Origin: Octopus bimaculoides
Lineage: Eukaryota
NCBI RefSeq assembly: GCF_001194135.2
Contig: NC_069002.1
Span: 4,751,378-4,815,377, forward strand
Direction of reading: 5' to 3'
DNA: 64,000 nucleotides
Below the pieces are notes generated by a model, which saw nothing but the letters and a program-made list of their open reading frames with translations, made no database searches and had not been told where the DNA came from. The position numbers were made by a program, and so were the translations under genes. Positions 31,059-31,249 of the stretch are shown one piece after another (the stretch's first letter is position 1; each line of letters opens with the position of its first letter).

Positions 31059-31249
31059 GACCCTTAATGGTTATTGTTGTCTATGCTCCCCATGGTAACC
31101 TTAGAGATTTTCTACGTGACCATCGACCTCCTGTAAGGTCAGGAGACACCTACGAACGACCCGTAGCTACCAGATCTCTCACTCAAAAAGACCTCATATC
31201 ATTCTGCTATCAAGTAGCAAGAGGAATGGAATATTTAGTATCAAAAAAT
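31059..31249 (+). CDS. FGFR: FGFR exon: hinge and kinase insert, [64 protein letters not shown]
   Basis: Long pyrimidine tract ccAG acceptor, AAT|GTAAGT donor, 191 nt, phase 1 to 0. Confidence 0.98.

Follow-up and report, generated by a model that had tools for sequence, protein, structure and literature searches.

Valine occupies the molecular-brake glutamate position of the FGF receptor kinase in Octopus bimaculoides and, apparently, throughout the coleoid cephalopods

In FGFR2, the molecular brake of the kinase hinge is formed by N549, E565 and K641 (PMC5293489, Chen et al., eLife 2017). The pathogenic changes N549H/T, E565A/G and K641R disrupt the autoinhibitory hydrogen-bond network at this site and result in profound activation of the kinase; E565A/G are gain-of-function mutations, and E565A was the most active of the single mutants studied (PMC5293489). 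The brake is one of four coupled sites, the others being the DFG latch, the A-loop plug and the αC tether, and mutations which weaken the αC tether lower the activity of FGFR2 (PMC5293489). A molecular brake at the hinge is common to the receptor tyrosine kinases (RTKs) FGFR, PDGFR, KIT, FLT3 and others (Chen et al. 2007, as cited in PMC5293489). When engaged in the unphosphorylated kinase, its hydrogen bonds hold back rotation of the N-lobe. Brake mutations are also among the commonest acquired mutations conferring resistance to FGFR inhibitors, and E566A of FGFR2 (E566 being the IIIb numbering of E565) shifts the IC50 of futibatinib 10-fold (PMC10767308). The p.E566V change of FGFR2 was acquired by a patient on futibatinib, as cited in PMC11184230.

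The E565A and E565G alleles are associated with Pfeiffer-type craniosynostosis and with resistance in cholangiocarcinoma. In these two alleles and in E566V, the carboxylate is replaced by a small apolar side chain. Some RTKs naturally lack a glutamate at the position following the gatekeeper (gatekeeper+1), EGFR having Gln and MET and AXL having Pro there. These kinases belong to other families which, unlike FGFR, are not known to be regulated by an Asn-Glu-Lys brake; their likeness to the receptor described below is a hinge that can work without the glutamate.

The DNA analysed here, referred to as the window, is a stretch of 64,000 nucleotides from contig NC_069002.1 of O. bimaculoides, and it carries a gene for an FGFR from the Ig1 exon to the stop codon. 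Like vertebrate FGFR1-4, the octopus receptor has three Ig domains, a transmembrane segment and a split tyrosine kinase, and its kinase domain is 62-64% identical to theirs. Octopus and vertebrate receptors share the Asn and Lys of the brake, and in both the DFG latch, the Arg of the A-loop plug and the pair of A-loop tyrosines are present. The glutamate, which is the hydrogen-bond hub of the triad in the vertebrate receptors, is a valine in the octopus FGFR, and the hub is thus missing. The position is the one altered in human E565A, E565G and E566V, and E566V is the exact amino acid change that constitutes the wild type in coleoids. The human alleles are rare pathogenic or drug-selected somatic variants on a Glu background, whereas the coleoid Val is apparently a fixed wild-type residue. 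The nearest relatives outside the cephalopods are the FGFRs of Crassostrea/Magallana, Haliotis, Patella, Lottia, Aplysia, Capitella and Lingula, with 68-73% identity in the kinase domain. In these and other molluscan and lophotrochozoan receptors the hinge motif reads VIVEYA, VIVEFA or VVVEYA, in contrast to the VIVVYA of coleoids.

Seventeen coding exons were mapped in the window by tblastn with human FGFR1 and with the O. vulgaris and O. bimaculoides FGFR proteins; a signal-peptide exon was not located in the window. The gene runs in the order Ig1, an acid-box-like exon, Ig2, Ig3, transmembrane, juxtamembrane, eight kinase exons and a Ser-rich tail exon (Table 1). The eight exons from 28994 to 34493 have canonical splice sites throughout and give an open frame when joined. 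Over the kinase domain, the spliced product matches the public O. bimaculoides entries A0A0L8HTH4, A0A0L8HTJ0 and XP_014769539 at 100% identity. In the O. vulgaris orthologue, which is 98% identical to the window protein over its full length, Pfam detects three I-set/Ig stretches and PK_Tyr_Ser-Thr at 452-725. The hydrophobic transmembrane stretch ILVGVIMTFLFILTFILIIVCL is encoded by an exon mapped in the window.

Table 1. Features of the FGFR gene in the window (positions counted from the first nucleotide of the window).
Feature	Position	Strand	Remark
FGFR gene, part inside the window	1891-40092	+	Ig1 exon to last coding exon and stop
Gly-rich loop GSGAFG	29627-29644	+	Intact
VAVK catalytic Lys	29708-29710	+	Intact
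Brake Asn	30495-30497	+	AAC in HKNIINLLG, retained; FGFR1 N546, FGFR2 N549
Hinge / kinase-insert exon, 191 nt	31059-31249	+	AG acceptor, GT donor, in frame with neighbours
Gatekeeper Val	31076-31078	+	GTT; FGFR1 V561, FGFR2 V564
Brake-Glu position	31079-31081	+	GTC (Val); FGFR1 E562, FGFR2 E565/E566; placed by HMMER alignment to FGFR2 chains and MAFFT column
Catalytic loop HRDLAARN	32061-32084	+	Intact; column conserved as in other FGFRs
Brake Lys	32112-32114	+	AAG in LKIADFG, retained; FGFR1 K638, FGFR2 K641
DFG	32121-32129	+	Intact; column conserved as in other FGFRs
Activation-loop tyrosine pair YY	32157-32162	+	Intact; FGFR1 Y653/Y654; column conserved as in other FGFRs
A-loop plug Arg	32675-32677	+	CGG, retained; FGFR1 R661; role of the residue from PMC5293489
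Last coding exon	39976-40092	+	Ends in TGA stop

The receptor has the sequence features by which the FGFR family is recognised: extracellular Ig-like domains, a single transmembrane segment, a cytoplasmic tyrosine kinase with a kinase insert, and the catalytic motifs. Its nearest relatives in sequence and in structure are FGFRs, rather than RET, PDGFR or VEGFR. Among the matches listed by the protein homology searches, the named best ones are all FGFR and RET enters only at 52% identity or below; PDB sequences of FGFR2, FGFR3 and FGFR1 are matched with E = 1e-130 to 1e-125. An AlphaFold2 model of the window-encoded kinase, built from an alignment of 56 sequences, has a mean pLDDT of 82.9. The kinase core is of high confidence, with 232 of the 363 residues at pLDDT 90 or above; confidence is low at the termini and, within the activation loop, over residues 214-219. 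The top 50 Foldseek matches of the model are all FGFR kinases, the best being FGFR2 with a TM score of 0.92-0.96 normalised to the PDB chain; these results confirm fold and family and do not discriminate an active from an autoinhibited state. Architecture, best matches, fold and motifs thus identify the gene as a member of the FGFR family. Members of the family bind FGF and signal once the ligand has dimerised them; data on FGF/FGFR binding in cephalopods were not found in the literature searched. The αC Glu and APE are also present in the spliced product and, since the kinase motifs are all intact, the octopus FGFR is by its motifs a catalytically competent kinase and no pseudokinase.

The window belongs to a draft assembly and contains 2640 N in 11 gaps. 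Two of the gaps, 3073-3675 and 28760-28952, lie inside the FGFR gene, and because of them UniProt splits the gene into A0A0L8HTJ0 and A0A0L8HTH4. The gap at 3073-3675 covers the latter half of Ig1 (LSILRYALVIEDSTKADSGNYACYAHNQHGKIWGNFTLLVR in O. vulgaris), which XP_014769539 lacks. In the gap at 28760-28952 the transmembrane exon loses its juxtamembrane end (...GGTDYKKRVIVMKP in O. vulgaris), and here the RefSeq model reads intronic sequence as NDLYYQ. A 17.6-kb intron at 10268-27911 splits Ig3 at the place where vertebrate FGFRs hold the alternative IIIb/IIIc exons. A second copy of the C-terminal half-exon of Ig3 was not detected by tblastn in this intron, which contains four N-gaps. Relative to O. 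vulgaris, NRK is added at the junction of the same intron in the RefSeq model of O. bimaculoides.

No genes are evident in the window between the FGFR stop codon at 40092 and an ORF of 164 amino acids at 61919-62413 on the minus strand, about 22 kb downstream. Over its first 93 residues, this ORF matches Helraiser, a Helitron transposase, in the C-terminal helicase region (PDB 7lcc_A residues 1352-1449, E = 8e-16); the ORF has no Pfam match at 1e-3. It is probably a decayed Helitron fragment. Long imperfect low-complexity tracts of the (TATA/CACA/TGTA) type occupy 41650-42250 and 51740-52250 and give rise to spurious ORFs of 110-190 amino acids on both strands.

Direct translation of 31067-31087 (ATG GTT ATT GTT GTC TAT GCT) gives MVIVVYA, within an exon with canonical borders. 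The codon directly after the gatekeeper Val is GTC, as had been read in the original prediction, and the other two residues of the brake are intact (Table 1). Residues were numbered by MAFFT alignment on human FGFR1. In a HMMER comparison with PDB sequences, the octopus kinase aligns to human FGFR2 kinase chains with E = 1e-130 and is free of gaps around the hinge. The top-scoring PDB sequence is 2q0b, the E565A mutant of FGFR2, with VIVAYA in place of the octopus VIVVYA. Because the hinge aligns to the FGFR2 chains without a gap and the best-scoring structure is the E565A mutant itself, the octopus Val is, by alignment, the unambiguous equivalent of FGFR2 E565. The equivalences assumed for the whole triad in the original prediction (N546/E562/K638 in FGFR1, N549/E565/K641 in FGFR2) agree with the same alignments, and the activating effect of E565G/A on which it drew is in accordance with PMC5293489. 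Of the residues that characterise RTKs autoinhibited by a hinge brake, the octopus receptor therefore has the Asn and the Lys and lacks the Glu at gatekeeper+1.

The hinge exon is 96.7% identical to the O. vulgaris genomic exon, flanks included, and 86.6% identical to that of Argonauta. A mutually exclusive exon coding for Glu was considered and rejected: tblastn of the window with the exon peptide, at E = 100, finds the single exon and no second copy. The codon GTC contains no A, and A-to-I editing is thus unable to restore Glu, as had been argued. It had also been argued that GTC lies two changes away from a Glu codon. GTC does differ from Glu codons at positions 2 and 3, but the distance was overstated since only position 2 alters the amino acid, and one nonsynonymous step (GAG to GTG) followed by synonymous drift suffices. 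The GTG of Argonauta is one step from GAG.

A short interspersed tRNA-like repeat (GGTTCAGTCCCAC...) followed by a T-run is present at 30926-31000, about 60 nt before the acceptor of the hinge exon. Partial copies of it occur at about 611-646, 5120-5162, 6763-6813, 33220-33265 and 52918-52953. ARAGORN calls no tRNA genes in the window, and the repeat probably represents a SINE family common in the octopus genome.

The state of the brake column was determined in other animals. It is Glu in 198 of the 198 non-cephalopod FGFR/RET-like kinase domains retrieved and in all 119 additional short non-cephalopod fragments. Among the representatives of clusters formed at 50% identity, all those sharing 50% identity or more with the octopus kinase have Glu as well; the representatives without Glu are only proteins of less than 48% identity or one-residue offsets in BLAST. 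All other molluscs sampled have Glu, namely Haliotis, Patella, Lottia, Gigantopelta, Littorina, Aplysia, Lymnaea-type snails, oysters, mussels, a scallop, clams and a chiton. Of the three brake residues, Asn differs in about 15% of the relatives, and neither Glu nor Lys varies. Because the Asn varies and the Glu does not, the latter is, in these alignments, the most constrained member of the triad. Residues shared by coleoids and rare elsewhere were found at 18 positions of the kinase, and the change from Glu to Val is the sole one at an otherwise invariant column. Judged from these comparisons, the occurrence of Val at this column is far beyond chance.

The same residue was followed through the cephalopods. 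The O. vulgaris chromosome assembly OX597835.1 has GTC at the brake-Glu position and the genome assembly of Argonauta hians has GTG. VIVVYA is also found in the O. sinensis protein XP_029649481, in the cloned cDNA of Idiosepius paradoxus (BAI67805.1) and in intron-less RNA-seq contigs of Sepia esculenta and other decapodiforms, with GTT in those contigs whose DNA was fetched. The runs SRR19578114 and SRR31864757, from which Val-bearing contigs derive, are of Sepia esculenta (PMC11917092); the contigs of SRR27666065 and SRR24189498 are assigned to decapodiforms by similarity only. By pairwise identity, the coleoid sequences recovered represent at least seven species: three of Octopus, Argonauta, Idiosepius, two Sepia-like and one further decapodiform. 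Val is present in every one of them, in both superorders and in the three synonymous codons GTC, GTG and GTT, and the brake Asn and Lys are strictly conserved. The mapping over octopods, decapodiforms and other molluscs, which had been proposed as a check, thus gave Val in all coleoids recovered and Glu in the other molluscs sampled. As far as these sequences go, the substitution is no octopus oddity; it is Coleoidea-wide. Among the more than 300 FGFR-like sequences sampled, Val at the brake site is apparently fixed across Coleoidea and unique to them.

Since three synonymous Val codons are in use in both superorders, the amino acid has been conserved while the third codon position drifted. 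When Sepia is compared with another decapodiform, the dN/dS of the kinase domain is 0.013. For octopus against decapodiforms, pN is 0.05 and synonymous sites are saturated at pS 0.77. The coleoid FGFR kinase domain is under strong purifying selection. The gene is also expressed, full-length transcripts being assembled from many RNA-seq runs. These observations point to an ancient, selectively maintained change in Coleoidea.

A sequence intermediate between coleoids (kinase identity of at least 90%) and other molluscs (at most 73%) was sought for Nautilus with full-length, kinase-only and 142-residue hinge-centred queries, and none appeared among the matches listed. The change may be coleoid-specific or pan-cephalopod. 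A report of the coleoid Val at the FGFR brake site was not found in the literature searched. The Idiosepius FGFR cDNA has long been public, so the sequence is not new; the observation that the brake Glu is lost appears to be.

The reading preferred here, about which belief and doubt are evenly balanced, is that the hydrogen-bond brake has been dismantled by evolution and that the coleoid FGFR is measurably brake-released while still ligand-gated. The hinge Glu would have changed to Val in the common ancestor of living coleoids, most simply by GAG to GTG, and the Val would have become fixed and then been kept by purifying selection. Valine offers no hydrogen-bond acceptor to the side chains of Asn and Lys, and the canonical brake network would not be able to form. 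If human FGFR2 E565A/G/V are a guide, the coleoid kinase would, in its unliganded form, sample the active state more readily. The predicted consequences are a higher basal activity, a lower activation threshold and easier trans-autophosphorylation after dimerisation, along with a lower sensitivity to ATP-competitive FGFR inhibitors. The kinase is not expected to be constitutively on, because derepression of one site alone does not fully activate FGFR kinases. Gating by ligand-driven dimerisation and by phosphorylation of the A-loop tyrosines would be kept, since neither the DFG latch nor the A-loop plug Arg nor the A-loop YY has changed. For the loss of the brake, and for how large its effect on activity would be, the argument extrapolates from human FGFR2, whose kinase domain is about 63% identical. 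A residual interaction between Asn and Lys could act against brake release, given that both are conserved in coleoids; the Lys is invariant even in relatives without the brake Asn.

The most serious alternative is that the change is compensated or neutral. Here, other coleoid changes or the hydrophobic packing of Val, on the aliphatic part of the brake Lys and on neighbouring Ile/Leu/Met, would keep the hinge restrained and the basal activity ordinary. An allele that goes with disease in humans has here stayed fixed for long, which suggests that the organism is not harmed by hyperactive signalling, and the retention of Asn and Lys under very strong purifying selection on the kinase domain is in line with such a restraint. 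There are also 17 other coleoid-specific substitutions in the kinase domain, for example L480M, P483Q, K618N and R675K (FGFR1 numbering), through which compensation could act in ways not apparent from the sequence. Tyr558, on the same β5 strand as the Val, is changed to Met/Leu, a change not unique to coleoids. At K618N, the residue is Asn in all coleoids and Lys, Arg or Gln in other FGFRs; the site (VSKNCIHRD in the protein, near 32058-32060, at the exon junction 31249/32055) directly precedes the Cys-Ile-His-Arg-Asp of the catalytic loop. A putative loss-of-function variant K618N of human FGFR1, of which the literature searched gave no confirmation, would fall at the position of the coleoid Asn change. 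K618N, R675K, L480M, P483Q and Y558M/L are candidates for epistasis with the Val.

The other three allosteric sites were compared at their named positions (those of the αC tether, of the DFG latch and of the A-loop plug), and no coleoid-specific changes were found there. The DFG latch is unchanged in coleoids (I544, L614 and F642 of FGFR1, corresponding to I547, L617 and F645 of FGFR2), as is the A-loop plug Arg (FGFR1 R661, FGFR2 R664). At the αC tether coleoids have V534, V537 and H/N647 (FGFR1 numbering) at the positions of FGFR2 M537, M540 and D650. The V/V/N state of the tether is also found in Patella, Lottia and Gigantopelta, all of which have kept the Glu, and the tether was dropped as a coleoid-specific compensation. 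The sharing of this state with Glu-bearing gastropods weakens the case for compensation. Moreover Ala, Gly and Val at the human FGFR2 site all behave as brake-disrupting, and compensation could just as well come from ligand levels or feedback, beyond a kinase that would itself still be brake-less. On balance compensation within the kinase is regarded as possible but doubtful, and it is ranked below the brake-released reading.

It could also be supposed that the gene in the window is a divergent cephalopod paralogue with a specialised role, and that a canonical FGFR bearing Glu resides elsewhere in the genome. The searches returned the best 120 matches from any taxon, and an octopus paralogue of roughly 45-55% identity could escape such a list. 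However, all cephalopod FGFR-like proteins recovered, from at least seven species, form one orthologous group of 77-100% identity. No second cephalopod sequence is among the top matches of the full-length, kinase-only or hinge-centred queries. The kinase of the window gene is closest, at 70-73% identity, to ordinary FGFRs from oysters, abalone and annelids, and the architecture is the standard one of three Ig domains and a kinase. A paralogue is accordingly considered improbable.

A sequencing or assembly error, which the original prediction had named as grounds for refutation, or a private polymorphism of the sequenced individual, might be suspected in so gapped a draft, but either is ruled out with near certainty, as Val recurs, in three codons, in two independent genome assemblies, a cloned cDNA and many RNA-seq assemblies of other coleoids, and the hinge exon lies about 2.1 kb from the nearest gap (28760-28952).

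If the brake-released reading holds, it has a wider consequence, which is put forward more tentatively than the reading itself. Coleoids would be the only animal clade known so far in which the FGFR brake has been dismantled by evolution, and from the beginning of their crown group their FGF signalling would have relied on a kinase that corresponds to a human craniosynostosis, cancer or drug-resistance allele. The pathway would have been re-tuned to a lower activation threshold, and the receptor would be less sensitive to inhibitors. The amount of autoinhibition required by an RTK could then be studied in coleoids as a natural experiment. The brake Glu ranks with the most conserved residues of the FGFR kinase and with those of most clinical importance. 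Its alteration in the germline leads to skeletal syndromes, and its somatic alteration renders the kinase active and makes FGFR drugs less effective. The existence of a clade with Val as the wild type shows that the brake Glu is not indispensable. The coleoid FGFR would also serve as a background in which to seek what makes loss of the brake tolerable, intragenic epistasis or buffering at the level of the pathway. For the developmental biology of cephalopods, the resistance of human E566A and E566V suggests that FGFR inhibitors and dose ranges established in vertebrates may under-perform on this receptor.
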